This document shows positions 1 to 60,269 of a DNA stretch of 64,000 nt, in pieces. The stretch is from Geosiphon pyriformis uo1 (lineage: Eukaryota; Fungi; Glomeromycota). Both the position numbers and the translations under genes were made by a program. Position 1 is the first letter of the stretch; every line of letters begins with the position of its first letter. The notes under the pieces were generated by a model, which saw only the letters and a program-made list of their open reading frames with translations, made no database searches and was not told where the DNA came from. Where the stretch lies: the NCBI GenBank assembly GCA_016748015.1, contig JAAOMT010000566.1, positions 62,001 to 126,000 of the forward strand, written 5' to 3'.

Positions 1-531
1 TCTGGGACAATTAATGGAGGTTTCAACAATAAGAGATCCATTGGTAACCAGCAAAATGGTCAGTTTTCGTCTGGTACAATTAATGGAGGTTTCAACGATA
101 AGAGATCCATTGGTAACCAGCAAAATGGTCAGTTTTCGTCTGGTACAATTAATGGAGGTTTCAATGATAAAAGATCCATCGGTAATCAACAAAACGGTCA
201 GTTTTCGTCTGGGACAATTAATGGAGGTTTCAATGATAAAAGATCCATCGGTAATCAACAAAATGGTCAGTTTTCGTCTGGGACAATTAATGGAGGTTTC
301 AACACTAAGAGATCTATTGGTAACCAGCAAAATGGTCACTTTTCCTCTGGTACAATTAACGGAGGTTTCAATGATAAAAGATCCATCGGTAATCAACAAA
401 ACGGTCAGTTTTCGTCTGGTACTATTAATGGAGGTTTCAACACTAAGAGATCCATCGGTAACCAGCAAAATGGTGATTTTTCGTCTGGTACTATTAACGG
501 AGGCTTTAACGATAATAGTAATCTCTATTAG
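1..531 (+). CDS. Kex2-processed repeat protein (KEP) paralogue 1, 3' part only (5' end outside window)
   Basis: Manual frame +1 translation (not in ORF track, no start codon): SGTINGGFNNKR, six full 23-aa units SIGNQQNG[Q/H]FSSGTINGGFN[D/T]KR, then SIGNQQNGDFSSGTINGGFNDNSNLY and TAG at 529-531. Same unit and C-terminus as 14960-15712. Confidence 0.93.
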   Translation, partial: SGTINGGFNNKRSIGNQQNGQFSSGTINGGFNDKRSIGNQQNGQFSSGTINGGFNDKRSIGNQQNGQFSSGTINGGFNDKRSIGNQQNGQFSSGTINGGFNTKRSIGNQQNGHFSSGTINGGFNDKRSIGNQQNGQFSSGTINGGFNTKRSIGNQQNGDFSSGTINGGFNDNSNLY

Positions 532-2187: not shown

Positions 2188-3731
2188 TCATTGAACCGGA
2201 TAGAAATTTCTACAATCACCAAAAGTTGTGTCAAACCATGGACCAAAATTTGCACTGTCACTTGCACCATTTCTTCCTACATTGCATTCCTGAAAATAAT
2301 AAATACTTTTCAAATTAATGTTTTAAAATTTAATAATTTGAAAAATCATAATAAAACTTCAAACATTAACCGGATTTTCCCCGTATTGTTGACGACTAGG
2401 ATAATATCCAGGACACTTATAAACCGTATATAATCTATTTTCTCCAATTTCTGATTGCAAAGTTGGACATTCACAGTTGTCTCTGGGAATCCAATATTCA
2501 GTTTCGGTATGCCAATAATGTTCCCCGACAGCATCTTTTTTCGGGTATTGTGAAACAAAATCATTAGAATGTGTCACTCGAAAAATATGCAAATCGTTTT
2601 TATAGCGATAAAATAGTTGGGCAAATTTATTATTGCCAAATCGTGGTTGTCCAAAAGTTACAACTTTGCCAAAGATTCGTCGACCATTAGTTTCCTTTAG
2701 AGTAGCTCCATTTATCTGGGATGCTAGTATATATCCCATGAGATTTAATGCATATACTGTATTTAAGTTGAAAAAAAAGCGGTATGAGAATTTCAAAGTT
2801 ATTCCTCAAAAACCTTTAATAATTTTATAAAAGCCTACCTCCTCCAATTCCATGACCAGTAAAAATAACTTGAATTTTATTGCCACTGATTTTTTTGGTT
2901 AGATTTAATACAAAATTTAAGATCGAAATATGTGTAGTTTCACCACATTGTTTGGTGAAACTCTTATCTATCAAGATTTTTGTGCCCTTTTGAGGAAGGA
3001 AAAGGTGATTTTTACGAGTAACCCATTGTGTTCTTTTCAATTCCGGCCCTGGTAATTTTTGTTAAAAAAATGATTTTGTAAAATAAACGAATGAAAATAA
3101 AATTTCAGTTAATAATTGTGTCAAACTTTCAAATAAAAATATACCTCGAAAATAGCCAATTATATTTTCTTGATCGTCTAAAAATATGTCTACTACATAA
3201 TAATAATAATAATAATAATAAAAATAAAAATAAAAATAAAAATAATAAAATAATAATAATAATAATAATTATTAGAATAAGAATAAAAATAAGAATATTT
3301 ATTTTTACTATTTTTCAAAGAAAAGTCAAAATTCAGACTTGAAAAGAAGTTTTTCAATTCCTCAATAAAAGTGTTTTACCCAACATATTTTGTCTCGGAT
3401 AATTAAAAGGGGCTTTAACTTCCTTACAATACGGGATATTGGCAATTCTTGCCATTTTCTGAAGAAAATTTATTAAATTTTCATCAGTTACTAGCTCTTT
3501 TGGTGGTGATGAATTTCGAGGCTTGCCAAATCCTCCTGTACGTTTTGAGAGGTTGGATTGAAACTTTGTAAAGTTTGAAAATATATTTTCCGGAGAATAA
3601 ATTTTCGAGTGAGAAAAAGAATTGGAAATATTAGCTGAAGAAGAACTTGAATTATGAAGATAATAGTATGAAAATTTTAGCATAATGATAGATTGTAGTG
3701 AAAAATAAAAAAAAAGTTTCCAGCCTTCCAT
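2188..3731 (-). CDS. Class-3 lipase-like protein, probably secreted or membrane-anchored and catalytically dead; 5 exons, about 365 aa
   Basis: Exons 3731-3380, 3192-3145, 3048-2839, 2756-2371, 2289-2188 join in frame with GT-AG introns. Lipase_3 motifs: MARIANIPYC, GYFRG, IFTGHGIGG (GHSLGG elbow), VTFGQPRFGN, RVTHSNDFV, YWHTETEYWI, ECN...ANFGPWF. Hydrophobic N-terminus. Confidence 0.88.
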
Positions 3732-13944: not shown

Positions 13945-14286
13945 ATTTTATAAAAAACTTGAATCAATAGCACTTTGCTACAGTATAACTAAATGAGTAT
14001 ATTTTTAAATTGGAGAGATACTTAATTATATGCGTATTTTGCGTTTTACCAGGATCTATCGAGCACCAACCTATTCTTTCTCATCATGAAAATTTCAAAA
14101 AAAGGCTAGTGCTTGGTCATTCTTGCGGCCTAAATGAAACCTTTTCGATAAAGGTACAAGCCATCTTTTTCAAGGTTGATTTCAATGGTAACCGCATGCT
14201 TAGCGAAAACTTTGTTACCATAGGAGACCTAAATGAAATACCGAGAAGATAAACAGTCATATTTAAATTGAATTTGTTTCAAAATT
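13945..14286 (+). repeat. Diverged duplicate of the KEP paralogue-2 upstream region (matches about 14510-14817)
   Basis: Shared text such as aatcaatagcactttgcta...gtgcttggtcattcttgcggcctaaatgaaaccttttcga...ttgaatttgtttcaaaatt; weaker match from about 13795/14396. Confidence 0.9.
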
Positions 14287-14306
14287 NNNNNNNNNNNNNN
14301 NNNNNN
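14287..14306. other. Assembly gap (20 N)
   Basis: Directly visible. Confidence 1.
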
Positions 14307-14844
14307 ACTTGTTTAGCCAAGCATCAGGTAGTAACCGTTTATAGTAATACGAAAGTTTTCTAATATTAGGGTAATCATATCTATTTTTGATGCTCCCAAT
14401 AAACCGTTCGTTCCGTTTCCTATTATAGTAATCAACTGAGCGCATAACTTTATGGACTTTCAAATGCTTTTATCAAATGAAGTTTTGATTAATCAAACCA
14501 ATATAATCTATTTATAAAAAACTTTAAATCAATAGCACTTTGCTATAGTATAACTAAATGAGTATATTTTTAAAATTGCGGAGAATATATAATTATGCAT
14601 TTTACCATCTATCATCATGAAAATTTAAAAAAAAAGGTTAGTGCTTGGTCATTCTTGCGGCCTAAATGAAACCTTTTCGACAAAGGTAAAGCCATCTTTT
14701 TCAAGGTTGATTTCAATGGTAACCGCAGGCTTAGCGAAAATTTTGTTACCATAGGATACCTAAATGAAATACCGAGAAGAAAAACAGTCATGTTTAAATT
14801 GAATTTGTTTCAAAATTAAACCGATCATGAGAATGGGAAAATGG

Positions 14845-14851
14845 TATAAAA
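14845..14851 (+). promoter_or_regulatory. TATA box of KEP paralogue 2
   Basis: TATAAAA about 110 bp upstream of ATG 14960, followed by a pyrimidine-rich initiator-like tract. Confidence 0.65.
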
Positions 14852-14959
14852 GAAGAGGTTCGCCTGCTCAATATCTCTTCATTCACACTCTAAAACATCT
14901 AAAAGAAATCTTTCTAATACATTTTTTTAAAAGCCTTAAAAACACTAAGATTGATTAAA

Positions 14960-15712
14960 ATGACTGGTAAAATTTTTATTACACAAATTTGCACAGCTAT
15001 TTTTCTCTTGTCTACATTTTCAACGTCTAGTGCAGCTGCATTAAATGCAAAGAGGGGTATCGGTAATCAGAACAACGGCCAGTTTTCCCATGGTACTATT
15101 AACGGAGGCTTCAACCATAATGGTGATAGATTAGGATATAATTCCAATGCAATTAGTAACCAGCAAAATGGTGATTTTTCGTCTGGGACAATTAATGGAG
15201 GTTTCAACGATAAGAGATCCATAGGTAACCAACAAAATGGTGACTTTTCGTCTGGGACAATTAATGGAGGTTTCAACAATAAGAGATCCATTGGTAACCA
15301 GCAAAATGGTCAGTTTTCGTCTGGTACAATTAATGGAGGTTTCAACGATAAGAGATCCATAGGTAACCAACAAAATGGTGACTTTTCGTCTGGGACAATT
15401 AATGGAGGTTTCAACAATAAGAGATCCATTGGTAACCAGCAAAATGGTCAGTTTTCGTCTGGTACTATTAACGGAGGTTTCAACAATAAGAGATCCATTG
15501 GTAACCAGCAAAATGGTCAGTTTTCGTCTGGTACAATTAACGGAGGTTTCAATGATAAAAGATCCATCGGTAATCAACAAAATGGTCAGTTTTCGTCTGG
15601 TACTATTAATGGAGGTTTCAACACTAAGAGATCCATCGGTAACCAGCAAAATGGTCACTTTTCCTCTGGTACTATTAACGGAGGCTTTAACGATAATAGT
15701 AATCTCTATTAG
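14960..15712 (+). CDS. Secreted Kex2-processed repeat protein (KEP) paralogue 2, 250 aa, intronless
   Basis: ATG at 14960 (the track's TTG start is 3 codons earlier). Signal-peptide-like MTGKIFITQICTAIFLLSTFSTSSA, then LNAKR; 8 KR sites; 9 repeat-like units (2 divergent, 6 exact KR-flanked 21-mers, 1 terminal). Confidence 0.95.
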   Translation: MTGKIFITQICTAIFLLSTFSTSSAAALNAKRGIGNQNNGQFSHGTINGGFNHNGDRLGYNSNAISNQQNGDFSSGTINGGFNDKRSIGNQQNGDFSSGTINGGFNNKRSIGNQQNGQFSSGTINGGFNDKRSIGNQQNGDFSSGTINGGFNNKRSIGNQQNGQFSSGTINGGFNNKRSIGNQQNGQFSSGTINGGFNDKRSIGNQQNGQFSSGTINGGFNTKRSIGNQQNGHFSSGTINGGFNDNSNLY

Positions 15713-16342
15713 GTATTATTGCGATGCATTCTATCTGATTAGTTTTTAAATAAAATATAGTTAATATAAGTTATGAAAATATCGAAATTAAATCTCAAAT
15801 AGATAAAAAATGCCTTTTATAAATAGTTTTGCTTTCAATTCTTATAATAGACTTCTATCATATTAGATTTTAAATTTTGCTATTTGAAACAAATGACGTT
15901 ATTTTTTTGGGGTTTAAAAATTTTCAATCAGTTGCAAATTAAGATAAATAGTTTTTATTCTTAATAAAAATGCAATTTTAATGAAATTGTAATATCATTC
16001 TTAAATAAAAAATATAACTGATTTTTTATTTTTGATGTATTATTCTTAAGATTGGTTCCTTTAACTACATCTCATTCCATTCTTTTTTCTTATCGTCTCT
16101 CATATCATTACTGGAATTATAAAAATATAACTTGGTCTATCAAAATATTTTGCCTATATAATAAAAAAACAACTCAATATTAATTATTAAGCATTATTAA
16201 TATTGTATTTAAATTAAAAACTCTAATATAGTTGTTTTTAGTTAATTTTTCAAATGCCATAATAATAACCATATTTAATTTGCTTAATATTCAAAGCTCT
16301 ATAAATTATACTAAAAATATAAAGATTGAAACAATATTTATA

Positions 16343-17699: not shown

Positions 17700-18060
17700 A
17701 TAGGCGATAGGCTCGGGCATAGGAAAACAAAGCGGACCTGATATGGAGAAAATGAATATGACATTGGCAAAGGGTTTTGTATACAAAGAATGGCATATAG
17801 AGATTCGGGGACACCAAGGTGGCTGATACGAAAATCGTCGAGCTGGTAAGAAATTTCGTGCGCATGCATCGTGAGGAAATTTGGCTACCAACCGCCAAAA
17901 CAAGAGCCGATAAGGAAAACAACCGGAGAATGATGTGGAGGAAATAAGATTCAAAGGGCCACACTTAGGAAATGTGGTATGTGGCTGGGACATTTATGTG
18001 CCATGGGCGTGCGCAAACCGTTCCAAATGGTGACTAATATTAGTGCCGATTTCCGCGAAA
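17700..18060 (+). mobile_element. 3'-terminal fragment of a LINE ORF2 (different family from 49-55.8 kb)
   Basis: Translates (one frameshift) to LAKGFVYKEW / KIVELVRNFVRMHREEIWLPTAKTRA, aligning with LCKGFVFDE* / RIVSFVRGFCLAFRDNVWLVRARHRA of the large LINE. Confidence 0.7.
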
Positions 18061-18061
18061 A

Positions 18062-21000
18062 ATTAGTTATAAGAAACAAAAATGTTATTTGTTATAACCA
18101 AAACAATTAGAACAAATAAATTTAGAAAATTTAGATCTATTCCAACAGATATAAATTAAATTGTTGTTTAACAATTTTGCAAATATTTTTGCAAGTAAGA
18201 ATAAATTTGAGAGAATTGATATTATTTAATATTAAATAAAAACCAAAGATACTATATTAATTAAATAAAAAACATACAAAGTTTTAATTATTAGCTATAA
18301 AATTATTTGCCAAGAAATCAATTAAATGTTAAGCAATAGATTAATTTAATTATTTATAAGTCTATAGTTATTATTAATATTACTTGTTAAGAAAAAAAAA
18401 TAGAAAAATCTGTTTTTGTATAGACTATAGAAAGCTTAACAGTATTATTTGTAATAACAGTTATTTAATTTCACATATTCAGAAATTGTTTAATGCTTTC
18501 AAAAAAAATGGTTTTTAATATTGAATTTAGATAGTAGTTATTAGTATGTAGTCATAAATTCAAATAACAAGAAAAAAATGACATTTATCACAAAAGAAAA
18601 AAATTTTGAATTTAATATTATGTCTTTTAACTTAATCAATACACCAATCATATTCTAATAACTAATGAAAACTATTTATACAAAAATATTGTAGAAATTA
18701 ATAGTTGTATATTTAAATAACACAAATATATTTTTTAAAACATTTGATAATTATTTTTATTATCTTTAATAAGTATTTAAAAAGTTGAAAAGAGTCAAAT
18801 TAAAATTAAATATTATCAAGTGCTTCTTTAAAAAAACAGAGCTTAAGTTTTTGAAACATATTATTAGTAAAAACAATATCAAAACAGATTCAGACAAAAT
18901 TAAGAAAGTTAAAGATTTTTCAGTACCAATAAATTTTACAGAACTAAAAACATTCTGGAATTTGCTAAATATTACTGCCATTTTATTCACTATTTCTTTA
19001 AATTGACTTAACTATTGCACTAGCTTTAAGCAAAAACACAAAATATAAATGAACTGAACAATAACAAGTAGTTTTTAATACACTAAGAAAAAAGCTTGTT
19101 CAAGCTTTAATATTAATTTATCCAGATTATAGTAAATTATTTATAATTACAATAAATATATTAAACCAAATATTAAAAACAGTTTTATCTCAATAAAAAT
19201 TCAATAAATAAGAATATTTAGTGATATATGTTAGCTAAAACTTGAGTTTAATATTACTACAAATTTTTTTACTCTTTTTTTAATATTGTTAATACTATTA
19301 TGCTATTAATTTTGTTGTTAATAGAAGTTAGTAAATTTTTAATAAGCTAATTTTTTTTAAAATATTTTTTTATATTTTAAACTATATATGTTGTTGAATT
19401 TATAATAAAAAAGTCAATTCTGTACTAATTATATGTATATTTATTTTGTAGTAAAAATTGACTCTTTTACAGAAAAATTTTATCTGTAAGCTTTTTAAAA
19501 TATGTGTAATTACTTTGCTATAAAAGTTAATTTTTTTACAGAAAATCTTAATTGTAAATAACTTAATAATATAAAAAAAAATAAAAAAAAAATAAAAAAA
19601 TAAAAAAATATGTTAAGAAAGTTATTAACAGTAATTAAAATTAATAGCTAATCAATTTCAAATTTTTAGTATAAAATAAGTTTTATTAAAATTGATTTAT
19701 AAAAAAAATATTTTTTTGAAAAAAAAGCTCTTTTTTTATACACTTTATTGTAATATTTTTCTAATATTTTGGTAAATTAAAAATATTTTTTGTCAAATTA
19801 CAAGTTATTTTTACAAACTATAAATTATTTTGATAATCTGTTAAATATTTTGTCAAATTATTAAATATTTTAGCAAATTTTAAATGTTATATAGTTTAGC
19901 ATATTATATAATCTGATTATTGCAATTTGATTATATTTGTGTTTTATACAAATTGAGTTATTAATTAAATAATAATTTGGATAATTTGATAAGATAATAA
20001 GTAATAAATTAAAATAATAATATATATTAATTAATAATAAAAGTTATAAAGATAATTTTTTTTTAAATAATATCTCAAATTTCGACTAATAATATAACTT
20101 TTTCTCAAAACTAAGCTCTGTTAAAGTCCAAATACTGTCTGTAATTTCCAAATAGTAGTTCAAAATTATTGAGAAATTTGGTCTAAAAATTGTTAAAATT
20201 TCAGTTCTATAAACTTTTTAATATATTAAATCTTTAAAAGTTATAAAATTGGGTTTTATAAAATGTTTTTACAAGTATAAAATAGATTATAGAGTCTAAA
20301 AGCTGTTTTAAGTTTGTAATAAATATTTGTTGATTTGACTGTTGTTTTAAATAACTTCAGTAGTAAAATTTACTGTTTTAAGCCCTAGTTTTTTTTCATA
20401 AAGTGTTTTTTAAATATAAAAATATTTATAAATTAAAGAATATTTGTTGTTTTGTTTATTAAAACACTATTAAAGTTTTTGTTGAATTGTGGCATTTAGC
20501 ATAATATCAATAAGTATAAACATTAAATTTTCTCTTAAAACTTGCTTTAAAAGTTTTGATAAGTAAATTTCAAAATAACTTTTTGTGTTTCTTCTATAAA
20601 AGTAGTAATTTTGTAAATTTGTGGTTAAAGATATAATTAATTCTGTTTAAGTGTAATTAATATATTTTTTGTAATTATTATAGATAATTTAAGTAGTATT
20701 TTTAAGACTAATATTAATTTTGGAATAATTGTTGAATGTTTTAAAGAATAATCATAATTACTAATAAAATTATTAATAAATAAACTATTTTTGTTATGTA
20801 AGATTTTTATGTTATTTTTGTTTTGTTTTTTGTGCAGTTTTTGTGCAGTTTTTGTAAAATTGTTTCTAAAATATAAAAAAATAACTATAAAAAAAATTTA
20901 AATTTAAATATTTAGGTTTAGAAGTTGTTCAATAATAATTATTAATTTTAAGTTTTAAGAAATATCTTTAGAAATAACCAAAAAAAATTGTGTATCAATT

Positions 21001-24000
21001 TGTGAAATAAGAGATTCAAAATTAATTCTAAAATAATAGTATTTTAGTTTATTATCATATACAACTTTTTTTAAAATCTTATTATCAAGTTTTAACTTGT
21101 ATAATCTATTTTTTAAAATTTTGTATATATAAAATAGTTTATTCTATTTATGATTAAATTTTTTATTTTATTGTTTTTTAATCTTAATTTTATGTAAGAA
21201 ATTTTTATTTTTAACTTTAAATTTATTAATAATTATTAACAATTTATTGTTATGTTATTTTTTTTGTTGAATTTAAAAGTGTTTTATATAAGTGGTTGTA
21301 ATTTGTTATTTTGCTTCTATATATTAAGAAATGAATAAGCTTTTTTTTATAGTGTTTTTTAAAAGTTGTTTTTAATAATTTGTTGAATTAAATAAAATTT
21401 TACTGTAAAATTAATTAGTAATATTGCTGTTTTTTTATAAATTAAATTAAATAACATGTGTTTTATTGTATTTTGTTTTAATATTTTATATATTAATAAT
21501 ACTAATAGAATAAAAAGATTTTATTTTTGCTTAAAATTTGTTAAAACTTTGGCTAATAATTTACAAAGTATTTTATTAAAATATTTTACAAGCTTACAAA
21601 TAATGTTTTTATAAATAAAATTTGCAACTAATTTTGTATTTACTTATTGAATTATTCTTATTTTAAATCATTTAGTAAAATAATTTACTGCAATTGCAAT
21701 ATATTGGTTTTTATAAGTTGTAATAAATAGTGGTCCAATTAAATTGATATTAACTTAATTGAAGGATTATCTAACTTTAATTAGATTTAAAAATTTTATA
21801 GAACATATTTCTTTTTTTTTAATATTTATCACAAAATTTAACATATTTATAAATATTTTTTTTTATTTAGGACCAAAAATAGTGTTTTAATATTTTTTGG
21901 ATTGTACTATCTCTTTTAAAATATGCTAATAAAGGATTTGAAAACATATTATATAGAATTATTTTTTTTTATGTTTTTAAATTATTCTAAGTAAATTGTT
22001 TAGATTTTTATAATTTCAATAATAAATAATATTATTGTATATAAAATATTATTTTATTTAATATTATAGTCAATATGTTTTATTTAAAGACTAATTTTCT
22101 GGTATTATAAGTGTTTTCAAGTATTATTTAAGATTGTTATAGTTTTTAAGATCTATTTTTTGTTGTTTATTGCTGTTAATTAGATTTAAAATACAGATTA
22201 AAATGATAAAAAACCCAAATTACTGTTGTTGTTTCTAGTTTAATAGCAAAATAATTTTTTCTGCTAATTTTAGTGTTCTACTAATATAAGTATTTACTTG
22301 TTTATTGCTATTATTATTTAATTAAAATCAGAATAACACCAAAAATAATATATAAAAGCATTTATAATTAATTAAAATCTTTTGCTAAAGTCTAAATAGA
22401 TAAAAATTAGGACTGTTGTAAGCTTTTTCTTAAGAATTTTAAAAGTTTTTTGTTATTTTTTGTTTATTTGTATTCAATATTTTTGTTGGTTGGATAATTA
22501 AATAATTTTGTAATTTTTGATAATAAAATACTAATTCAGTAAATTTTTTAGTTTTATGGTATTTTATAAGACTTTGAAGTTTTTAACAATACTAATTTTT
22601 TTTGAATCAAGTTTAGCTCTTTTTTTACTAATAATATGATTTAGGAAAACCAAGCTGGTCTTTTTAAAATGACATTTTTTAATGTTTAATTTAAATTTTG
22701 CTTTTTGTAATTATTAAAAAACTTTTTGTAAATAAACCAAGTAAGTTTTAAATAATAATAAATAAATATTAATATTATTTAGATAAACAACTATTAACTT
22801 TTAAAAAATTTCAACATAAACAATATCCATAAGTTTTTAGAATGTTGTTAATATATTACATAATTCAAATAGCATTATAATAAACTTATTATTTTTTTTT
22901 AAGTGGTAAAAGCTGTTTTAAAGTAATCTTTAAGGTCTATAACAATTTGTTAATATTTATTTTCTAAATTTAATATTGAAAAGTATTTAATATGTTGTCA
23001 ATTTAGAATAAAAAATAAACATTTTTAATTATAATATTATTTAGTTAGTAATAGTCAACACAAAAGCAGATTTTTCTGTTTTTTTGATAAAAACTACTGG
23101 TAAAACTTAAAGACTTATTAATAATTAAATAAGTTTATTGTTAAATATACATTAAATTTTTTCGTAAATAAATAAATAAATATCTTTCAATAAAACTTGA
23201 TAGACTTGTTGCTATTTGGTTTTGTATCTTTTATATAAATTTGATGTTAAATTAGATTAGTTTTTTCCAAATTATTGTTGTTTTTAATAAATATATTTAC
23301 ATGTTTTATAATTAATTTTTTAAGTTGCTTTTATTGTTGTGACTCTAATTGTTTTATATTATTTCAAAATAATTTCTTAATTACAACATAATAGTTTTTA
23401 ATAATAAAGTTTGAATTAAATATTAAGAAAGAATATCTAATTATTTTTGTAAAATTTAAAACTATTTGTGACAGTTCTTGTTAAAAATTATTACTATAAA
23501 TAATTCCAATTTTTAAATAATTATCTAATATAATAGAGTAATTATTAAGATTGTAAAAAATAATATTGAATTTTTTATTCAACTTAAACATTTGTTAAAT
23601 AATATTAAGTATTAAGTAAATATATGCTTTACAAACTTTTTTAAAAAATAAAATAATAATAGTTTTTGGTAATTTGAAAATCTGATAAGATTGATTTTAT
23701 ACATAGAAAACTATATTTACTAAAATAATAAATTGTTTAATTGATCTAAAATCTTGAGTTTTTTTTTTACTTTTGCCAAGTTTTTTTTAATTTATAACTA
23801 ATTGCAAATCCAAAATGTTGATTAAAAGTAAATAGATAGCTTAAGCATTTTTTTTAGCATGTTTAATTATAAAAATGTTTTTAGTGTATTCTGTATTAAT
23901 AATTTCTTTTTTAATATTAATTTTTTTCTTGTTAATATAATTAAAAAGCAATTTGTATAATTGCTTTTGGGAGAATTTCGAAAACAATTTTAAGATTGAT

Positions 24001-27000
24001 TTTTGTGAGTGATTTTGGTTTTAGATAAGAATATTTTTATTTAAATATCAAAAATCATATTTTGCATCAATTTTATGAGCTTTTTTTGGTTTGATTCCTT
24101 GTTTATTGTTGTCAAAGTATTTAAATAATAGAGCAGATTGGTTTTTGGTAAGATAAATTAGAGTTGTTAAAACTTTTTCTTCAATTTCTCCAAATTCGAT
24201 TTCTTTTTGATCATTTTTAATGAATAATAATATATTAAAAACATAGCATTTAAGACATTATATATTATTACAAAGCATAATATATACTTTTTAAAGTTAA
24301 ATATTTATGTATTTTAATCATTATATTTAAGTTTTTTTGGAGAGATATGTATGATTAAAGGTCAGATAGTAAAGTTTTACTTTGTTTTCATAGTTAAATC
24401 TGGCTAATTCTATAGTGTATTTAATATATTCTACTTCTTTTATTTGATAAATGTTTTTTTGAGATCTTTTATTAATTATAATTATTGCAAATTTATAAAT
24501 TATTTCAATATTATGTAAATAATAATACAATTTGTTAAGAATATTATTGTATACTGCAGTAAAATATGTTCCATGTTTTATTTTTTTGAAAATAAAAAAA
24601 CATATTGATAAGTTTGATTGCAGACTTTTTTTCTTATTACAACATCAATTTAATTGTATTTTTAAACAATAATTCTTTATATATAAGAAAGAGTATATTG
24701 TTTTATTTTTTACTTTATTTTAGGTTGTCAAATTATTTTCTGTGGCAAACTTTATAATAATAATATGTTCATGTTTTATATTTTTTTAGGTAATATATAA
24801 ACTCTTATAAATAAAAGCTTTTTATTACAATTTTTATATTTAAATAGAATATAAGCCAATTGTTTTTTTGGTTTTAATTTTAAGTATAAAATCTACTAAA
24901 TATTAATTTATTTATTTGTTAATGTTAATATAGCTTATTAACTAAATTTTTTAGACTATAATAATATTAATTGTGGTTTTAAAGTTCGGAAAAATTGTTT
25001 TGTTTTTTTAGCTCAATTAGACCAAAAGTTAAGTACTATATAGATTTTAGTTATTAATTTTTTTTTCTTTGAATTTAAAAACTAGTGTTTTTTTTAATTG
25101 TTTGTTAAAAATATTACAAGTAGCAAATATTTAAATATATTGTCTTTGATAAAAAAAATTTAGCTTTTGGGTTTTTTAATTTAAATTGATATTAGTTTTA
25201 AAAGACCAATTATTTTTGACAAAAACTTAGTATTAGAATACATTTATAAAAAACTTTAATTAAAATAGTAATTTTATTAATAATGAAAAAAAAGTTGTCA
25301 ATTTTTTTTATGTATGTCTTTTTTATATTATTAACAGTTATAATAATTATTTGAACAAATCTGTTAATATTTTGCTTAAGTTGTTATATTAACTGATAAA
25401 TAATAATACTTTTAATAGATTTATTATTTAAAATTAATTGAATAGATTTTTCTTTAACTTTAGTCTTAGTATATATTATTATAATTGCTTTTTGTTCAAA
25501 AATTGATGTATTGTTAAATAAAAAAGATGATTTATTTGTTTTAAATTTAAATAAAAATATGTTTAAAATATTGGTGTTTTTAGCAATTTTTACTAATAAA
25601 ATTGTAGTATTGTTATAAAAAAATTTTGCTATTGTATTATAATTCTATCTTTTAAAAGTATAATATAGTAAAAATTTGCTATTGTAAAATAACTAAGTTG
25701 TATGTAAAAATATCTGAGTGGTTGTTAATTATTATTGTAAAGTTCTAATTAATTATTAAAACCAAATTTGTTATTGGTTAATTAAAAACAGTTTTGTAAT
25801 ATAAATTGGTTAGGTAAACCAATTTTTTTGTTGATAATTAATAACTTTAAACTAAAAGTAGTTAATAGTATTATTATAATTGTTGTAAAACAAACTGATA
25901 ATAAATAGATTAAAATTTTAATAAATAGTAAATAGATGATTATAGATTGTAAAATTGTTTTTTTTAATCTTTTTGTATTTTTCTGCAATTGTGTTTTCAA
26001 TGTTCAAAAATTCTATAATAATAATAATTTAATAATTGTGTTTGGTTGTTATTAGATAATAATAAAATTTTTTGGTTTTTTTTTGATGGTAGTTAATATT
26101 TTTGTTGTTAATTGGCAAAGTATGTTTTAACTTTCTTAATAAGTTAATTGATTTTTTTTTTGCTGCTAAACTGGTTTTTTTAATCGCAAAGTTGACAAGT
26201 TTGGTGTAATTTGCTTTTTTTATAGCCATTTTATAGTACTTAACATGTTAAATAACAGTAATTAAATTTGTTAAAGCATATAAGTAAACTTTTTTGATTA
26301 ATTTATTTTTTAGATTAGTAATCTTTTAATCCAAAATTTGAGTATTATAATAATAAGCATTTGTTTTTAATTGATAAATTTTTTGAAAAAATTTGTTGAA
26401 CTTTTTAATATAAGTTATAATAGATTCAAATAGTTTTTATTTAATATTTTAAAAGCAGTTTTGAAATGTAATTGAAGTATTGTTATTTGTAAACTATTTG
26501 TAAAAAGCATTTTTAAAAACTAATTAATTTGCAAAAAAAGTGGCCAAATTTTCGAATTATTTACCTACAGTTTTTATAAGAAAATAAGAAATTGTTCTTA
26601 AAATTCTTATTGTATTTTATCTATTTACATTTTCTGCTTTAGTAACTTAATCAAATCACTTTTGGAGACTGGTTTCAGTGTTTTTTTCAGAAAAATCAGA
26701 TATTTTTACAATATAAGTAATCATTTTTTTGTTTTTTTTGTTTTTTTTAATTGATTTAAAAACGTTTTTTTTATGAGCTAATGTTTTTAAATATTTATTT
26801 TGGTTTTTGGCTAAATAATTAAGAAAATTAATACTAGTATAAATTAATTTTAGCTGTTAAATAAGACTTTTGGTAATGTTTTTAAGTCTTAAAAATTGAT
26901 TAAGTGGTGAATTTAGTCTTTGTACTTGAGCAAGTAAAGCTAAAAAAAATGTAATTAAAAGTGGTAATTTAGTATTGGTTCCTTGTTTAGGTGTTTACAA

Positions 27001-30000
27001 ATGTTAAAAATTTGTTTTTGGTATATTGGGTGTTATATAAACTGGGTAGGTGTTTTTTTTTGCTTTGCTGCTTGTTTTTGGTTCTAATTCAAGTTTAAGA
27101 ACAAATTGTGAGTTAGCAGAATATTTTTTTCACAAAACTTAATAATATTGTATTCAAGTTTTTCGAAATAAATAGTATAAGTATTAGCATTAATATTTTT
27201 TAAATTTTTGTTCGAATAGTAAATTAAGTTTTTAAAAAAGTTTTACTTGACTTCTATAATATTGTAATTTCCAAAAAAATAATTGTTGATTCGATTTTCA
27301 ATGTATTAAAAAAGTGTTTTCTTAAAAACTGTAATTTTGTCTCAGATTTCAAATTGTTGTTTGTAATAGTTACCACTTTGATTTAATTGTTGCTATGTTA
27401 TTTCTAAAAAGCATCAAATATTACTTGAGGTTTTTTTACACTTTTTTTTATATTGTTAATACTGTTATGTTGTTAATTTTGTTGTCAATAAAAGTTAATA
27501 AACTTTTGATAAGTTAATTCTTCTTCTAAAGTATTTTTTATACTTTGAACTATGTATGCTGTTGGGTTTATAATGAAATAGCCAATTTTATGCCAATTAC
27601 TTATATAGTTACTTTGCAGTAAAAGTTAATTTTTTTATAGGAAAATCTTATCTGTAAGTTTTTTAAAAATATGTGTAATTATTTTGCTATAAAAGTTAAT
27701 TCTTCTACAAAAAATTTCGACTATAGACGACTTAATAATATAAAAAAAAAGAAAAAAAGAAAAGAATTTAAACTAAAAATTAAAAATTAAAAAATGTGTT
27801 AAGGAAGTCATTTCGAATTCAGGCCTAGAAGTTACTAATAATTACTAAAATTGATAGCTAATCAATTTTGAACAGAAATAATTAAGAATTTTTGTTCTTT
27901 AAAGTGAGTTTTATTGGAATTGATTTGTAAGAAAGATATTTAATAAAAAATTAATTCTGATTAAGATATATTTTTTTAAAGAAAAAAGCTCTTTTTTTAT
28001 ATAATTTATTATAGTACTATTTTATAATCTAACACTTTTTTCTTTTTTTAATATTTTGGTAAACTAAAGATATATTTTATCAAGCTACAAATTATTTCTG
28101 CAAACTATAAATTATTTTGGTAAACTGTTAAATATTTCATCGAATTATTAAATATTTCAGCAAATTTTGAATGTTATATAGTTTAGCATATTACATAATC
28201 TGATTATTACAATTTTATTACATTTGTGTTTTATACAAATTGAATTATTAATTAAATAATAATTTGAATAATTTAATAAGATAATAAATAATAAATTAAA
28301 ATAATAATAGATGCTAATTAATAATAAAAGTTATAAAGATAATTTTTGCTAAATAATATTTTAAATTTCGGCTGGTAATACCAGCCAAAAAAAATTATAG
28401 CACTTTAAAACTAAAATATTTAGTTATTTATTGGACTGTAATAAAATAAAAAAAATACTTAAGTCAAAAATTTGACATATATATAGACTACAAAAAATTA
28501 ATATTGATTCAAAAGCAAAAATTTGAAGATAATTGTCATATAAAATAGAAAATAGATTATTATTATTTAATTATACAGTATATTATAAAAAATGAAAAAA
28601 AATGAAAATACTAATGATTTATTCAAAATAAAATAAATCTAAGAACATTTTAATACTAAAAATAAGTCAAATTATAAATATATCAATATATCAATAACTT
28701 TAATATTATATTAATACTCAATAGTTTCAAAAAAATTATTTTAAAATAAACAAAACAATATAAAACAACAATCAAAATATTTTATTATTTATCAAAATAT
28801 ACTATATTAAAAAATAAAAAAAAGCCAAATCAATTACTTAAAGTAGTTATAGAACCAAAAAAAAACAATATTATATAATATGCATTCAGAACCAACAGCA
28901 GAATATTTTCATAAAGAAACTACAATTGAAAAAACCAGAAAATAACATTACTATTCATTAATATATTTAGACATTATTTAATATATTTAAAATTATAATG
29001 CTTGTTAAAAAAAAGAAAAACAAGACCCAATAAATTATTAAGACCAATAAAAGTAAGATAACTATTTAATTAGATTATAATTAACTTGGTAGAATTACTA
29101 ATAATTATTAATAAAGACAATAGATATATAGTAGTAATAATAAATTATTTTACTAAATAGCCAGAAGCTAAAACTATCCAAAAAGCCAATACAAAAACAA
29201 TAACAAAATTTGTGTACTAAAAACTAATTTTTTATTATAAATGTCCAAAAAAATTATTATTAAATTAAAAAACTTATTTTGTAAACAAAACATTAACAAA
29301 ATTAAGTCAAAAATTTGAAATAAAAAGATTATTATTATTACTGTATTATCTATAAAAAAAAATTGAATTAAAAAGTTCAATAGAATATTGTATAAAATAA
29401 TTGTTAAAATTAGCCAAAAAAATTAAAAAAAATAAGACTTGTTTATATTATTAATATTATTTGTTTATTAAACAACAAAACAAAATATAATTTAAACAAT
29501 ATTATTTAAATTGGTTTATAGTAAAATAATAATACTATTAATTAAGATAGATATTTAAATATATCTAATTAAACCAATAGCAAAAGCTATTTTTTAAGCA
29601 ATATTATTACAAAAAATATATAATTTAATAAAAACACTAGAAAATAAATAAAGAAAAGCAGCTAATAATATTTAAAAGTTACAAAAAAAACAAAAAAACA
29701 ATATAACAACTAGCTATTAAATAAACCAATTGAATTTAAAATTGGAAACAAAGTGTTTTTATATTATATTAAGACAAAAAAACAATAGAATAGAAAATTT
29801 AATCTCAAATAAGATAGTCTATTTTACATTAAAAAAATTTTAGGAAATAATATCTATAAATTAAAATAGAACAATAAAATTTTAGCCAAAACAACATATA
29901 ATAATTAACTTAAACCATATTATAATAGAATATTATTAGTTATTAATAACATTCTACAATTGGAAGTATAAAAAATATTAATTAAACCAGATAAAATTTC

Positions 30001-31600
30001 ACAAAATTTAAAACTAATAATAATTATTAAAGCAAATACATAAATCAAATTAGCCAAAAATATAAAAACCCAATATATATGACAAAAAAAAAGCAAAAAA
30101 ATAGAAATTATTAATAATATTTATTTTATTATTTAACAATTATTTTAACTTATAAAATATTAAGAATTAAACATAAAAATTATAATTAATAAACAAACTA
30201 TTTAATATAAAAACACAAAAAAGAAACAAGAGCTCTAAAATAATTAAAAATACCAAGTATATTTATTATTTAAAAATATAATAGATAAAATAATAATAAA
30301 AGTAAAAACAGTATTAAAAAATTCAATTAAGATTACAGTATATTAAAAGATAATCAAAAAAAATTGAAATTAATAAGTACAATAATTTTCCAAAAACTTT
30401 TGCTATTATTACTTAGAAAAACACATATTTAGAACTTGTATATAAATAAAACTAAGCAAATATTCAATTCAATTATATTATAACAAATAGAACAATTTAT
30501 GAAAAAAGACAGCTTAATTATATATACAAAAGCAATTTATTAATTACAAACAGGATTTCAAGATTGTTTAAAAATATTGTTATATTCAATAATAGATACA
30601 ATAACAATTAATTAATAAAAAAAATTATTAATGCTTAGTTCAAAGAATTACAGATTAAAATTAACAATGTAATTTTAGAAAAAGAAGTAATAAAGTTAAT
30701 TTAAAAAAAAATTGGAAAATTTTAATAAAGCTTAATATTAAAAAAAAGATAATATTACTTATATAATAATAGAACCAATAAGATAAATAAATAGCCAATT
30801 AAAAATAAACATAATAAAAACAAATTTTGAATTCTTTTTAATTAAATCTTAAGATTTTAGAATTCTAATAATACTTTTAATAGAAATTGCAGAATTTCAA
30901 AAATATTTATAGAAAAAATTCAAAAATTTCAAAAAATTTTATATAATAAAGATTATGTATATATAACAGTAAAAATAAAAATAAAAAAGACAAACCAGAA
31001 TTTAAAACAAAAATTCAAGAATTAGTTTTCTTTTTTTCTCTTTTACTTTTAAAATTAGTTTGCTATTACTTAAAATAAAATTATTTATTTATTAATAAAA
31101 TTATTAATTACTATTCAATTTATATTGTTATTATTATTTAATTAAATTATTTACTTTTTTAACCACATTAATAATTCATGTTAATAATAACTAATATTTA
31201 ACTATATTAAAACAATAGTTTTTAATTATAACTATTAACAAGATATTAATTTCTTAATTTTTTTATTCTTTTTATTCATTTTTTTTATTTGTGTATTTAA
31301 TAATTGATTAAGAAAAAGCATTAAAATTACAATATTAAAAATTATTTAATAAAAAATACCAAGATAAAATATAAATTAAATAATAAAAATTACTTACTAA
31401 AAAAATATGTTCACCAAATTAAATTAGTTATTATGTTAAAGAGTTAGATATTAAGTATTGTCAATTATTTGTTATTAAATCTTTCTTCCTAAAAAGTATT
31501 GTTAACTTATAATATTAAAACTTAAAAACAAAATTCATAAGCTTTAACCAATTCAAAGATATACTTTTAAAGTATTTTAGTAATTTAAACACTATAATTT
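18062..31600 (+). mobile_element. Gypsy A: 5'-truncated, heavily decayed Ty3/Gypsy (RT-RNase H 18062-19251, interrupted; RNase H-integrase from 28381; probable 3' LTR about 30753-31600)
   Basis: Collinear by eye with Gypsy B pol (18085 vs 38588; 28381 vs about 39758). 30850-31450 resembles 32960-33570. Ends approximate. Confidence 0.75.
19252..28380 (-). mobile_element. Gypsy D: full-length decayed Ty3/Gypsy nested in the RNase H of Gypsy A; LTRs 19252-20094 and 27419-28380
   Basis: Two direct repeats with TATTAC...(G/A)TAATA ends (decayed TGTTAC...GTAACA). PBS-like relic next to 27419. Gag relic MAIKKANYTKLVNFAI matches Gypsy C MTMEEANRTKLVNLAI. The host reading frame resumes at 28381. Confidence 0.8.
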
Positions 31601-31870
31601 AATTGTAAAATAAATTTTTTTATATTATTAAGCAAAGTATAAATAAAATTATTATTCAATATTTTGCTTAATTTAATTAAATTTACTGTTAGATTAAAGT
31701 AATTAAACAAGAATATTATATTAATTTTCATATTTTAAATCAATTTATTAGAGATTAAAAAGCAATATTTTAGAAAAAATATATTTTGCTGTTACTTAAA
31801 TAAAAAAAACCAATTCAAAACAATTAAAAAAAATGTAATTAATATATAATAACATAAAAAAGTGTGATAA

Positions 31871-31950
31871 TACAAAATAATACAGAATAATATGTAATAA
31901 TTCAAAATAATATAAGATAATACACAATAATATAAAATAGTACAAAATAA
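31871..31950. repeat. Degenerate 10-bp tandem repeat (TACAAAATAA-like, 8 units)
   Basis: Directly visible. Confidence 0.7.
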
Positions 31951-32955
31951 CTAATTATAACATAAATAATTTATTATAGCATAAAAGATCAAAACAATAA
32001 CAGAAATAATAAGTAATAACTAGTAATAACTAGTAATAACAAATAATAAAAAGCAATTTTGTAAAATTAGAAAATATATATAAAAATAAACAGTTTTAAC
32101 AAATAAAAAAAAACAAATAAAAAACAAGAACTTATTCTCTTAAAATTACATCTTATTTCTAACTTAATAAAATCTTTTATTTTAATTCTTTAATATTTTA
32201 TACTTATTATTAAATAAAATATTATTTAATTTACTTTTACATAATTTCAGAATTTGTATTATTAAAATTAAATTAATTATGTTTCTTATTCTTGTTTTAG
32301 ATCAGATATTTTTAGCATAAACAGCTTCAGAATTTTAATAATATAGGCTAATTACTTTTGATTATAGCTATTGACAATATTAATTTCTCTTTTTTTTTTT
32401 CTTATTTTTATTTTTTTTGAATTTTTTATTTTTTTCTGGTAAAGTAATAATGTTAAGAAAATTAATTGTTTGAGAATAAACTTTGTAATAGCTTGGTAAA
32501 AAAAAAGCTTTTCTTAGGTTTAAATATTAATTTTATCTTGTTAACTTATCAAAAAAACAAAAAAAACAATATTAAACTTTAGTAATTGTGTTCAATTAAT
32601 TTTAAAAAAATAGCTTATATATATGTAATTGCAAACAGTTAAACCATATTTCTGTGCTTTATAACTAAAAAACATTACAAATAAATTCATATATATTAAA
32701 AATCTTTAAAGACTAATCATATCAATCTGCTATTTATAGCAAACAAAAAAAATTCTCAAGCTTTCTTATTTAAATATAGAGCACTAAATATTATTATTAT
32801 ATCTTATTAAGTTTATTTGTAATACTGCCTACTTTAATTTTTTATTAGAAGTTATTACACTTAAAGCTCTTAAATTAATTAAAAAAAAGCTAATTATTGT
32901 TATTTATAGAATATAGAAAGTATATTAGCATATAAATTAGCCAACCAGAAGTAAC

Positions 32956-35900: not shown

Positions 35901-38900
35901 CTAACTAATCTCCAGCTTCTCAAACCAGTCATTGAGATCATGCCAACAGAATTCAAGAACTGGGTACACACAAAACTTGAGTTCTCAGAACTATTTAAGC
36001 CTTTTAGTAATACCAAAAGATGCCTCATCTAGCAAAACGGAACTCAATTAAAATAAACCACTTATTAGCAATATTCCACCAGCCACCATCATAGAAGATG
36101 AGTCACTTATAGCTATATTTCTTTTCAAAATAGAAGAACCATCAGAAACACCTTTGTTTAGTGGAACTGCACTCGAAAAAAAACGCATCACTGTAATATA
36201 CACTAATGTCAAAGTTAATGGCCACTCCATTAAACTAATCCTCAATAGTGAATCAACTGGCAGCATCATCATAAGACAACTCATGAACCAATTAGGTTAC
36301 TGAGTTGATTGAACTGCCAGTACAAGAATCATCATGGCAAATAAAGCGACTAAAACTCCAATTAGCAAAATTAATGACTTCTCCATCAAAGTCAATAGTA
36401 TTATAGTACCAATCAAGGTACTAGTCATGGAAGCCACCCAATACCAAACACTCATTAGTAATAACTGGCTGTTCAAAACCAATGTGGTACTTAATTAAAC
36501 CCCCCAAGAACTTCAGTTAAGCCAGAACAGCTAACATAAGAGTACCAGCTTCTTGTGACCACTTTAAACCAACCATCATGCAACCACTAATCAAACTAAA
36601 AGAAAAAGAAACTAAATCTACTTGGAAAGCTTATCAAGTTTCTTGGGCCAACAAAAATTACAACAAGCTGCTGCCAGTATCTTCATAAGACAACCAAGGA
36701 AAAGGAAAAAGAAGAGAAGAACTTACCTGAAACACTGACCAATTATCATGGGATAACAATAATTAAAGCAAGTTATTATCAATTTGGATCTGGGAAGAAA
36801 AGAGAAAAGAGAAAAAAAAGGAAAGCAAAAACACACAAGACCCCAACCCTATGTATATTTTATATTCGGCACCACAACCACAAATCAGTTACCGTCAATT
36901 CAAGCTAGTATATGTTGATTGTGACAAAAAATTATTGACAATAGGCACATGCTGTAATGACAATAAGGAATACCAAATGGCAACTAAGTTTTATTGCCAC
37001 CCATGCATTATTAAACACTTTAAAAGACCAAAACAAGTTGAAAAATAGGATAATAAATCATGCTTGGCTTGTGGAGAAACACTTCTAGACAAAAAAATGT
37101 GGAACAACATTCCTGGGCAAAAAAGAATGTGCAATAAATTGTGTCAATACATGATTTTAATAAGTGACTGGGTTAGGAAAAAAATATTAATAGAAGCCAT
37201 CTAAAAAAAAGCTGTGAAACATTTGGACAGATGCCCCCATGATAACAATGAAATCTGGCAAATGGCACTTGCCAAAATTGAAGGAGCATCAACAGAAGAA
37301 ATAAGAATGATCAAAAATAATCCACCAGAATCCATAGAACTTAACTGAGGCTCAAACCCAAATATTATCCTAGAATCTATGGACCCAAAACAATTCTATG
37401 AGCATTATTAGGAATTAGCACTTATTAAAAAAGAACAAGAGCAGTGTTTAAAGCAGTTGAATACTCAATTATGTCAACATTGCTTAATTTCCTATGACTT
37501 TCAATATTGTAATAAGTGTGATCTCATTTACAATCTACCACTACACATGATCTACATAATTTCAAAAAAAAAAAACCCAATCAGCAGCTATGGATTGGAA
37601 TCGGAATCACTATTCAATTCCAATTCAAACTCTGACAATGATAACAACAAAAATAACAGTTCCAGCTCCATTTAAAATGGCAATGAAAACTATGATGATT
37701 CAAACTCTGATTTAAATCCAGAAATATACATTGCACTTCCTGATCTCACCAAGAAGCAAGAACTGAAATGGTTCAGTGATAATAACAAAAATATTATGTC
37801 AGAACATGCACATAATACTGATACAAGATTTGATCTAAAATATCTTAGAAAAGACACTATCAAATTAGAACCACATTTGCGCACATATATTGATCTCAAA
37901 ATAGCACTGGAAATCCCAGCAACAACAATGGTTCAACTAGCATTTAGAAGTAGTTTAGCAAAAAAAGGAATCAATATTAGAAAAGAAATAATTAATGCAA
38001 AATATATAGAAAACATTATTGTAATGCTACAGAATGACTCTGAAAAGGCCTATATTATAGAACTAAATGAAAAGATTGCACAGGCAATATTCTTATCTTT
38101 GGTGAAAATAGCTCAGTTAGTATCAGTGGGAAACAGAGAAAAATTAGAGATTACAGCTAGAGGGATACAGGGTTTTGGATTAATAGATAGAATAGATGTA
38201 TTAGTTAATATAGCAGAAGAAAAAATTGTTGACAAGAAAAAAATTATCTCCACCTCTCAATCAATTTCCATTCCACCATATAACCAGTACATGGTAGTTA
38301 TAGAGAAAAAAGTAAAAGATCAAATTCAAATTTTTGAGACAAAAGCAATACTGTATAAATCAAAAAAAATTGGATTAGTCAATCTACACATACCAGCCAA
38401 GAACCACAGTTATATTAAAATTCCTATTTACAACAACATGGAAAATGTCATCAAGATACTAAAAAGAACTACTATTGAATACTTAACCACCAAAATTGAA
38501 AACCAACTGCCAGATACTATTTCAGACTTTCCACAACTGTGTGAATATATAGATATCATATCACAAACAATATACAGACAAAAAAAATGTTATTTGCTTC
38601 AACCAGAACAATTGGAACAGATGAACTTGGGAAATCTAGACCCACTACAATATATGTAGCTTAAGATGTTACTCAACAATTTCAATAACATTTTTGCCAG
38701 CAAAAATAAATTTGGCAGAACCAATATCATCCAACATCAAATCAAGACTGGAGATGTAATGCCAATTAAACAAAGAGCATACAGAGTACCACCAGCCAGC
38801 CATGAGATCATTTATCAAGAAATCAATAGAATGCTTGACAATAGGTTAATTCAGCCATCAATAAGCTCATGGTTGTCACCAGTGGTATTAGTCTATAAAA

Positions 38901-55000: not shown

Positions 55001-55790
55001 TAAGATCAGTGTTTACCATGATATTCGCACCAGTAGCCTTTTCAGTGGCCTTTATTAGACCTGATTCGGAAGTGAATGTCGCTCTGATGATCCCTGAGAA
55101 TTTTAAGGGGGTAGATGCCCCCCCAAAACCATTAATTCCAGAAAATAAACCCCTGATCTTCTTGAGCTTCTTCTGGGCCGAATTTCTTTCTACCACTTTC
55201 AGATCCAAATTCAAAGCAAATGACTTCCTAACCAAAACATTGACCAGGTTCTTAAGAGGAAGGGGAAGTACCAGAGAGGCATTCAGAAAAACATCATTGT
55301 TATTATTGTCATTCAGGAAGTCGATCTTTCCCAAAGGTTTACCCAATGCTTTCCTAGTTGTCAACCGTGAACCTTTCGGCGTTTGATCCAAATCTCCACC
55401 AACGAGTACACCACCTTCATCATAATCGAAACTTGTCTCCTTAACAAGACATTCCTCTTCCATATCAACACTGTCAGATTCTGTGGTATCATCAGTCTCC
55501 AAACCCCATGAACGACCACTATGCACTCTAGCAGAACTCTCTTCAGCACCAGCATTGTTCTCAAGAACACTGCCTCTTCTCTTTTTCCTTGACAGAACAG
55601 CCTTGAAACCACCCTCAGAGCCAGAACTTTTAACCATCTGTTTCATGACAGCAATACTAGGGCCAACAATGGCCTCGTAATCAAGCAGAAATGATTTGAA
55701 TTTATCATACTGAATGGTAAAAAACTTCTTTCAAGAAACTTTTGACTCTTTTTTTTAGGATTTGTGGAGGAACGAGAGAAAGAAGTTTTT
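49031..55790 (-). mobile_element. Near full-length non-LTR retrotransposon (LINE) with ORF1 and ORF2 (APE endonuclease, RT, RNase H, C-terminal Cys/His motif); mildly pseudogenised
   Basis: ORF1 about 55646-53853 with knuckle CAK(Y)EKLGHTSLGC. ORF2 53856-49167: CNVRG, VTETKL, ILGGDFN, TIDYVF, TDH (APE); KAYDSV, QGEVFSPLLW, FVDD, YLGIFL (RT); YMDGS, ELQAI, DSQAA, VKGHSG (RNase H); CLFC..DHVFSC. Decayed poly(A) at 49031-49052. Confidence 0.93.

Positions 55791-60232: not shown

Positions 60233-60269
<37 letters not shown>

Follow-up and report, generated by a model that had tools for sequence, protein, structure and literature searches.

A candidate KEP-type peptide precursor family with Asn/Gln/Gly-rich repeats in Geosiphon pyriformis

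Known repeat precursors and the Geosiphon locus

KEX2-processed repeat proteins (KEPs) combine, by definition, a signal peptide with three or more near-identical internal repeats, which together cover at least 15% of the protein and are separated by KEX2 sites (PMC6339444), and they occur in nearly all fungi (PMC6339444, PMC5293756). Here we analyzed a 64,000-nucleotide stretch of the Geosiphon pyriformis uo1 genome (assembly GCA_016748015.1, contig JAAOMT010000566.1, positions 62,001 to 126,000; hereafter, the window) and focused on a gene encoding a 250-aa protein whose sequence gives good support for a KEP-type secreted pre-pro-polyprotein. To our knowledge, G. pyriformis is the only Glomeromycotina fungus that houses cyanobacteria, and it is used to look into the origin of arbuscular mycorrhiza. 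All of the sequence features of a KEP could be found: a signal peptide (by heuristic assignment), repeats, KR dipeptides between the repeats, and a kexin gene in the genome. The kind of precursor is already known, both from KEPs and from the Gly/Asn-rich KR proteins of Geosiphon; the family built on this core peptide is unannotated and uncharacterized.

The N-terminus of the precursor contains a lysine at position 4, a 16-residue hydrophobic core (Kyte-Doolittle values up to 2.1) and a run of small residues (S-S-A-A-A), and we judged it to be a signal peptide by a rule of thumb that considers charge, hydrophobicity and small residues. A propeptide of 5-7 residues ending in KR follows, and nine cores then account for about 80% of the precursor length. 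Tandem Repeats Finder detected a 69-bp period at 15152-15696 (7.9 copies, 90% matches, score 845). Eight KR sites are present, after residues 32, 86, 109, 132, 155, 178, 201 and 224, and the lysines and arginines of the mature part are confined to these pairs with the sole exception of R57, which lies in the linker of the double unit. In-silico cutting after KR gave a 32-aa pre-pro piece, one 52-mer, six 21-mers and one 26-mer. The original prediction, made from the letters of the window, had described a signal-peptide-like N-terminus, a KR and 69-bp units each ending in KR, an arrangement that the open reading frame (ORF), Tandem Repeats Finder and in-silico cleavage all confirmed; its list of products (six near-identical 21-mers, a 26-aa terminal peptide and a 52-aa double unit) was identical to the one we obtained by KR cleavage and K/R trimming.

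The six 21-mers fall into four sequence variants, with substitutions confined to core positions 9 (Q/D) and 21 (N/D/T), and synonymous changes among their 69-bp units affect 8 codons. The mature part consists of 21.6% Gly, 20.6% Asn, 12.4% Ser and 10.1% Gln, lacks Cys, Pro, Met, Glu, Trp and Val, and contains zero N-x-S/T sequons. Each predicted peptide is 31-38% Asn plus Gln and 19-24% Gly, and none of the predicted released peptides carries a basic charge. Calculated monoisotopic masses amount to 2126.925, 2126.962, 2139.957 and 2140.941 Da for the four 21-mer variants, 2741.207 Da for the 26-mer and 5383.367 Da for the 52-mer, and deamidation at Asn-Gly would be expected to add 0.984 Da. 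The C-terminal peptide has no hydrophobic tail, and therefore no glycosylphosphatidylinositol anchor signal.

We compared this architecture with that of described precursors. The many KEPs of Rhizophagus irregularis are described as Tyr-rich and mostly carrying STE13 signatures (PMC6339444, PMC5293756); the Geosiphon precursor resembles them in its signal peptide, short pro-region, at least three near-identical repeats and intervening KR, but is neither Tyr-rich nor provided with STE13 signatures. With the alpha-factor precursors of Ascomycota it shares a signal peptide, KR-separated tandem peptides and (here predicted) Kex2 plus Kex1 processing. In contrast to alpha-factor, no X-Ala/X-Pro STE13 spacer is present, KR being followed by S-I-G-N (A-I-G-N in the W-type paralogues described below), the pro-region has only 5-7 aa, and the peptides are longer (21-52 aa), of low complexity and in far more copies. 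An alpha-factor-type pheromone precursor was rejected on the absence of STE13 dipeptide spacers after KR. Dikaritin-type precursors (ustiloxin/phomopsin) likewise have a signal peptide and KR-separated repeats (PMC6339444, PMC7329392); this candidate was also rejected, as the 21-mer has no Tyr and UstYa was unmatched in the genome, a search in which the controls were silent too. Rep1 of Ustilago maydis yields 11 peptides, which assemble into amyloid fibrils on the hyphae (PMC3133707). Its precursor architecture is similar and we propose it, by analogy, as a working model; Rep1 is a basidiomycete protein, and the likeness is one of architecture. The original prediction had placed the locus in the architecture of alpha-factor, Rep1 and dikaritin precursors. 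The architecture itself and the kexin gene bear this out, but the comparison with alpha-factor and dikaritins extends no further, as the STE13 spacer of the former and the core Tyr and a UstYa match of the latter were missing.

The closest described proteins come from related fungi and from Geosiphon itself. Gly/Asn-rich secreted proteins have been reported from Paraglomus, Ambispora and Geosiphon and are predicted to be amyloid-prone (PMC8786786). That source lists GpRIC1-3 (GenBank MH580277-9; Hoffrichter 2018 thesis) as very highly expressed Geosiphon cDNAs with KR motifs suggested to be Kex2 sites, which made up 22.3, 5.0 and 3.0% of cDNA library reads and whose thesis name ties them to the cyanobacterial symbiosis (PMC8786786). 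The 250-aa precursor shares with them the species, a signal peptide and Gly/Asn-rich repeats with KR, whereas GpRIC2 and GpRIC3 are recorded there with 456 and 470 aa; the GpRICs being compared by description only, the precursor may be a GpRIC, a GpRIC paralogue or a separate subfamily. By eye, the core shares IG..N..NG.F..G[ST][IL]NG with Paraglomus Pabra_AGL1 (PMC8786786 supplement), and because of this resemblance a shared origin of the precursor core and the Pabra_AGL1 repeat is plausible. A second pattern derived from Paraglomus, DGSFNGN, finds Gly/Asn-only precursors in the Geosiphon genome with modules of 67-100 aa that end in HKR (Table 1). These families are likely of the published GpRIC type and fit its description better than the 250-aa precursor does. 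BLASTP of the 250-aa precursor against one of them (L022) gave no alignment. Separately, a genome search with one annotated Geosiphon protein returned 82 Gly/Asn-rich places. Related Gly/Asn-rich KR proteins reportedly form a large share of Geosiphon cDNA, yet none has a known function. The original prediction described KEPs of this lineage as barely characterized; the lineage is better covered than that, since Rhizophagus KEPs are catalogued and Geosiphon RIC proteins are on record, although the present family is itself unannotated.

A paralogue family under purifying selection

We surveyed the whole Geosiphon genome (128.3 Mb in 792 contigs) and found the precursor to be one of a family, arranged in clusters, with at least 6 loci and at least 71 peptide units. 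The gene for the 250-aa precursor sits 15 kb beyond a cluster of three paralogues at C549:58.7-62.5 kb. A second cluster holds W-type genes, a 356-aa paralogue among them; these are predicted to release two-core peptides of about 52 aa. We refer to the units resembling those of the 250-aa precursor as F-type. A 92-aa gene, a duplicate of a 242-aa paralogue and one decayed fragment lie elsewhere in the genome. Several of the loci have intact ORFs, and all paralogues retain a signal-peptide-like segment with a dibasic site right after it (AKR, SKR or PRR). The W-type genes and the 92-aa gene contain double units and no other kind, and on the strength of this survey the double unit is probably the older form, the KR-bounded 21-mer being derived and amplified.

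To measure selection, 71 in-frame core units were gathered genome-wide and 61 of them were compared, the duplicate of the 242-aa gene being left out. In the peptide frame these 61 units showed a proportion of synonymous differences (pS) of 0.39-0.67, a proportion of nonsynonymous differences (pN) of 0.04-0.13, and zero stop codons. The ratio of nonsynonymous to synonymous change (dN/dS) was 0.08 within F-type units, 0.16 within W-type units and 0.10 between F-type and W-type, the last at a pS of 0.63, where synonymous sites are near saturation, and a pN of 0.13. The other five frames gave dN/dS values from 0.31 to 2.9, with stops. Across the 61 units, 14 of the 20 core positions never change in amino acid, although the codons for them do vary. 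Because a dN/dS of about 0.1 and freedom from stops are found in the peptide frame only, the precursor ORF is far beyond chance. Together, these results show that the peptide frame is under strong purifying selection and that the precursor is a real gene.

The region upstream of the genes is conserved as well. A block of about 200 bp, comprising the promoter and the 5' leader, is kept even in the W-type genes and the 92-aa gene, whose coding parts are only ~70% identical, and farther upstream the sequences have diverged. TATAAA is kept in 4 of the 5 aligned promoters, and an assembly gap interrupts the fifth; the precursor ATG has an A at -3. An orphan copy of the promoter, 99.4% identical over 340 bp to the region upstream of the 242-aa paralogue (geneB), runs into an assembly gap, where at least one further precursor gene has probably collapsed or been lost. 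Within the three-gene cluster, the frameshifted paralogue continues past its single frameshift in a different frame as far as the usual DNSNLY ending and stop, and is either a young pseudogene or a homopolymer assembly error.

Read data were examined for the same locus. Short-read unitigs of run X1 span the precursor gene and its flanks, with a word depth of ~27 in the unique flank, ~82 in the 5' part common to three copies and ~1900 in the repeat body. This agrees roughly with about 70 units, summed contig depth being a crude guide. Run X2, from the same sample, contains only pieces inside the coding repeats and nothing on the unique flanks, at a depth of 30-130 in the repeat body; one short X2 contig (window 15093-15179), with the paralogue variant G at 15155, reaches a word depth of 22,000. 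This depth pattern is not cleanly accounted for by low-coverage DNA or by an RNA library.

We next consider relatives outside the genome. Word-indexed protein searches with the 250-aa precursor and the 356-aa W-type paralogue returned no relatives, and they contained no protein named RIC. An exhaustive phmmer search against 1.84 billion representatives gave 26 weak matches (best 5.7e-14), which we rejected as homologues: the ten best are MORN, LRR, WD40, CAP and other repeat proteins by Pfam, and since they belong to such mixed repeat families the matches reflect periodicity and composition noise. A MORN repeat protein, with its 23-residue repeat, was rejected in turn, as the precursor had no Pfam MORN match even at E up to 1; Pfam as a whole gave sub-threshold noise. 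The best ESM Atlas score, 0.75, was uninformative, none of the 268 pattern matches in a JGI metagenome scan was confirmed, and look-ups of the exact products of three family members and of the exact sequences of six ORFs returned no match. The original prediction had proposed that the core be compared with published KEP catalogues; in the examined supplementary tables of two of them (PMC6339444, PMC5293756) the core motif had no match. The protein collection we searched includes annotated Geosiphon proteins such as G9A89_006378, which matches contig C580 of this genome with 99% identity across its exons, and does not contain the family ORFs, so the precursor family appears to be missing from the public Geosiphon annotation. 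As gaps, one frameshift and missing gene models indicate, this assembly and its annotation systematically drop secreted genes rich in repeats.

Inside the genome, we identified two more distant secreted relatives (L015 and L016). They carry the pattern G-N-x-N-N-G-x-x-S-x-G-x-I-N-G three times (GN.NNG..S.G.INGS.N) with no KR, and combine a signal peptide in the style of the precursor with a conserved, Cys-containing, non-repeat C-terminal part. These proteins may be related to the precursor family as unprocessed ancestors or cousins.

Predicted processing, proposed assembly and competing explanations

The genome encodes the machinery that such a precursor would need. A kexin gene at C608:603.8-605.7 kb (minus strand), searched as three separate open-frame pieces on account of its interruptions, encodes a Peptidase_S8 domain and a P-domain, beyond which come a region rich in Ser and Thr, a membrane-spanning segment and an acidic tail; the P_proprotein domain matched with 53 bits. 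Genes for S10 carboxypeptidases are also present. No match was found in the genome for UstYa/DUF3328 (PF11807), class I or II hydrophobins, or the fungal FAS meander domain, absences that are only suggestive because the control genomes were silent as well.

Based on the established biology of Kex2 and Kex1, the precursor would enter the endoplasmic reticulum, be cut by kexin after each of its 8 KR sites in the late Golgi, and have K and R trimmed from the peptide ends by a carboxypeptidase. Neutral-to-acidic peptides (one 52-mer, six 21-mers and one 26-mer) would then be secreted and, in bulk, these Asn/Gln/Gly-rich peptides would self-assemble into amyloid-like surface or interface material, in the manner of Rep1 rather than of a hormone. 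Taken as a whole, a KEP-type precursor whose Kex2-released peptides form self-assembling surface material is our best explanation, and one that we hold with moderate confidence. Considered by itself, the proposed function as bulk self-assembling amyloid-like peptides is more tentative, a possibility somewhat short of even chances; it is suggested by the very high unit copy number, the composition, the two-core 52-mers as sole product of the older paralogues and the invariant Gly, Asn, Ile and Phe positions, which are spaced as in beta-arch formers. If correct, it would explain how fungi of a lineage without hydrophobins cover their hyphae or symbiotic interface.

A more specific version of this function can be drawn from known amyloids. 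Bacterial curli CsgA repeats and the HET-s prion domain, with its two 21-residue pseudo-repeats, are beta-solenoid functional amyloids; curli is bacterial and HET-s intracellular. By analogy, the precursor family offers similar repeats of ~21-23 residues, rich in Asn, Gln and Gly, and a unit of two repeats plus a linker in the 52-mer, but it has no sequence or Pfam match to either system. The peptides could thus form a secreted functional amyloid in which the 21-mer is one rung and the 52-mer two rungs and a loop of an Asn-ladder beta-solenoid, a proposal that we regard as doubtful. Such an amyloid may replace hydrophobins or serve as a matrix at the interface between fungus and Nostoc. It would parallel curli or HET-s-type folds as a secreted amyloid of a eukaryote, and the many Gly/Asn-rich KEP families of the genome would then make up a lineage-specific amyloid-peptide toolkit.

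Several observations weigh against processing into self-assembling peptides. The signal peptide assignment is heuristic, and KR cleavage and peptide release are predictions. No RNA run containing the locus was found, the matching reads being DNA unitigs (X1) or ambiguous (X2). The W-type paralogues carry KR after every second core only, and therefore the 21-mer is not the sole product form; the KR-free relatives carry the core motif without any dibasic site of this kind. On both counts, the core may be a repeat with a structural role of its own. AlphaFold modelled the uncleaved precursor as a low-confidence beta-solenoid, a regular all-beta array (pLDDT 59.8, pTM 0.62), and the KR-free relatives as a different hairpin sheet (pLDDT 51.5); we set these models aside as evidence, given their low confidence and their disagreement with each other. 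A Foldseek search against the PDB returned nothing significant, its weak rows being beta-helix proteins.

These observations bear most directly on the possibility that the protein is secreted mostly uncleaved, as a folded beta-rich repeat protein (a wall solenoid or hairpin array, or an adhesin) with the KR pairs as surface residues. The all-beta array of the model and the weak beta-helix rows would be consistent with such a protein, as would the KR-free linkers between cores in W-type genes and the distant relatives in which the core motif, free of KR, accompanies a non-repeat C-terminal domain. The same model, however, places KR in mid-strand at a pLDDT of only 59.8, its structural matches are insignificant, and that of the KR-free relatives is a different and less confident hairpin sheet. 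Moreover, K and R occur almost solely as KR pairs at unit boundaries, a dibasic site follows the signal peptide in all family members, and the genome has a kexin gene. We therefore regard an uncleaved protein as decidedly unlikely. A repeat ORF without function, amplified recently and unexpressed or in decay, would agree with the frameshift in one neighboring paralogue, the decayed fragment elsewhere, the lack of an RNA run and the absence of the ORFs from public collections that do hold annotated Geosiphon proteins. Against this stand several intact loci, a conserved promoter and a dN/dS of about 0.1 between subfamilies whose synonymous sites approach saturation (pS 0.63), which make an ORF of this sort very improbable.

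Processing could also serve another end, with the Kex2-released peptides acting as diffusible signals (pheromone-like, quorum, or effectors toward Nostoc, plants or microbes) whose many copies raise the dose. This possibility draws on the architecture shared with alpha-factor and with KEPs proposed to be signalling peptides (PMC6339444), on an extremely conserved core with two variable positions, as expected for a ligand, and on the thesis name of the related proteins, which points to cyanobacterial symbiosis (PMC8786786). If it held, the peptides would be candidates for communication between fungus and cyanobacterium. Set against it, the core of the F-type subfamily is a low-complexity Asn/Gln/Gly sequence without charge, Cys, Pro or Trp, the STE13 spacer is absent, at least 71 units suggest bulk production, and known fungal peptide signals do not resemble the two-core 52-mers of the older paralogues; we consider a signalling role unlikely. 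Little favors a modification of the peptides in the way of dikaritins: beyond the signal peptide and KR-separated repeats held in common (PMC6339444, PMC7329392), the 21-mer offers no Tyr, UstYa/DUF3328 had no match genome-wide in a weak search with silent controls, and no tailoring-enzyme gene was found among the window ORFs searched (those of at least 150 aa window-wide, those of at least 90 aa in the first 15 kb, and the eight longest by Pfam). We accordingly give this reading an extremely low probability. Processing into self-assembling surface peptides thus stays our preferred explanation, and the locus is a clean case in which to test it, with exact predicted peptide masses, a kexin gene in the genome and a family missing from the public proteome.

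Coordinates and surroundings of the locus

The features of the precursor gene, its paralogues and its more distant relatives are collected in Table 1.

Table 1. Position of the precursor gene, its parts and related loci (window positions unless another sequence is named).
Feature	Position	Strand	Remarks
Precursor coding sequence	14960-15712	+	Intronless; ATG at 14960, TAG at 15710-15712; 250 aa
Signal-peptide-like segment, aa 1-25	14960-15034	+	Heuristic; cleavage expected after A25, A26 or A27
Short propeptide ending in first KR, aa 26-32	15035-15055	+	In-silico cleavage
52-aa double unit and KR	15056-15217	+	Two cores with 12-aa linker HNGDRLGYNSNA between
Six 69-bp units, each 21-aa core and KR	15218-15631	+	Tandem Repeats Finder, in-silico cleavage
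Last core and tail DNSNLY (26-aa C-terminal peptide)	15632-15709	+	In-silico cleavage
Conserved promoter and 5' leader block, about 200 bp	14756-14959	+	Aligns in all family members
TATA box TATAAAAG	14845-14852	+	115 bp upstream of ATG; read directly
AATAAA, putative polyadenylation-like signal	15749-15754	+	About 40 bp after stop; read directly
Orphan family promoter copy	13947-14306	+	Runs into 20-N assembly gap at 14287-14306
3' part of paralogous precursor	1-531	+	At least 9 units; ends in DNSNLY and stop; 5' end lost in 20-N gap just before the window
Cluster of three genes	C549:58.7-62.5 kb	mixed	Frameshifted minus-strand gene, intact 242-aa gene, 5'-truncated gene whose 3' part is window 1-531
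Frameshifted paralogue	L011:2755-3848 = C549:58754-59847	-	About 14 cores; single frameshift after fifth core
W-type gene cluster	C549:396-404 kb		Core position 10 F to W or N; KR after every second core only
92-aa gene	C778		Single double unit
Duplicate of 242-aa gene	C727		
KR-free secreted relative	L015:1117-1743; C549:424.6 kb	+	Three core-pattern copies
KR-free secreted relative	L016:934-1473; C549:275.8 kb	-	Three core-pattern copies
Gly/Asn-only HKR-module precursor	L022:1288-2220, C771	+	DGSFNGN
Gly/Asn-only HKR-module precursor	L019:1210-2418, C370	+	DGSFNGN
Gly/Asn-only HKR-module precursor	C773:421.6-422.3 kb	-	DGSFNGN

The remainder of the window contains features of other kinds. 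Between the precursor genes, at 2359-3731 on the minus strand, two ORFs look by eye like exons of a class-3 lipase-like gene. The GC content falls to 13-20% at 18001-32000, against about 30% elsewhere, and the GC skew switches sign near 28 kb. Retroelement remains occupy 37796-38659, 44286-45212 and 49851-55646, with ORFs for a dUTPase and a retroviral-type aspartyl protease on the plus strand and a LINE-like set of endonuclease, reverse transcriptase and RNase H on the minus strand. Toward the end of the window, at 59212-61386 on the plus strand, a 724-aa ORF with LAG1 DNA-binding and beta-trefoil domains encodes a CSL-type transcription factor.

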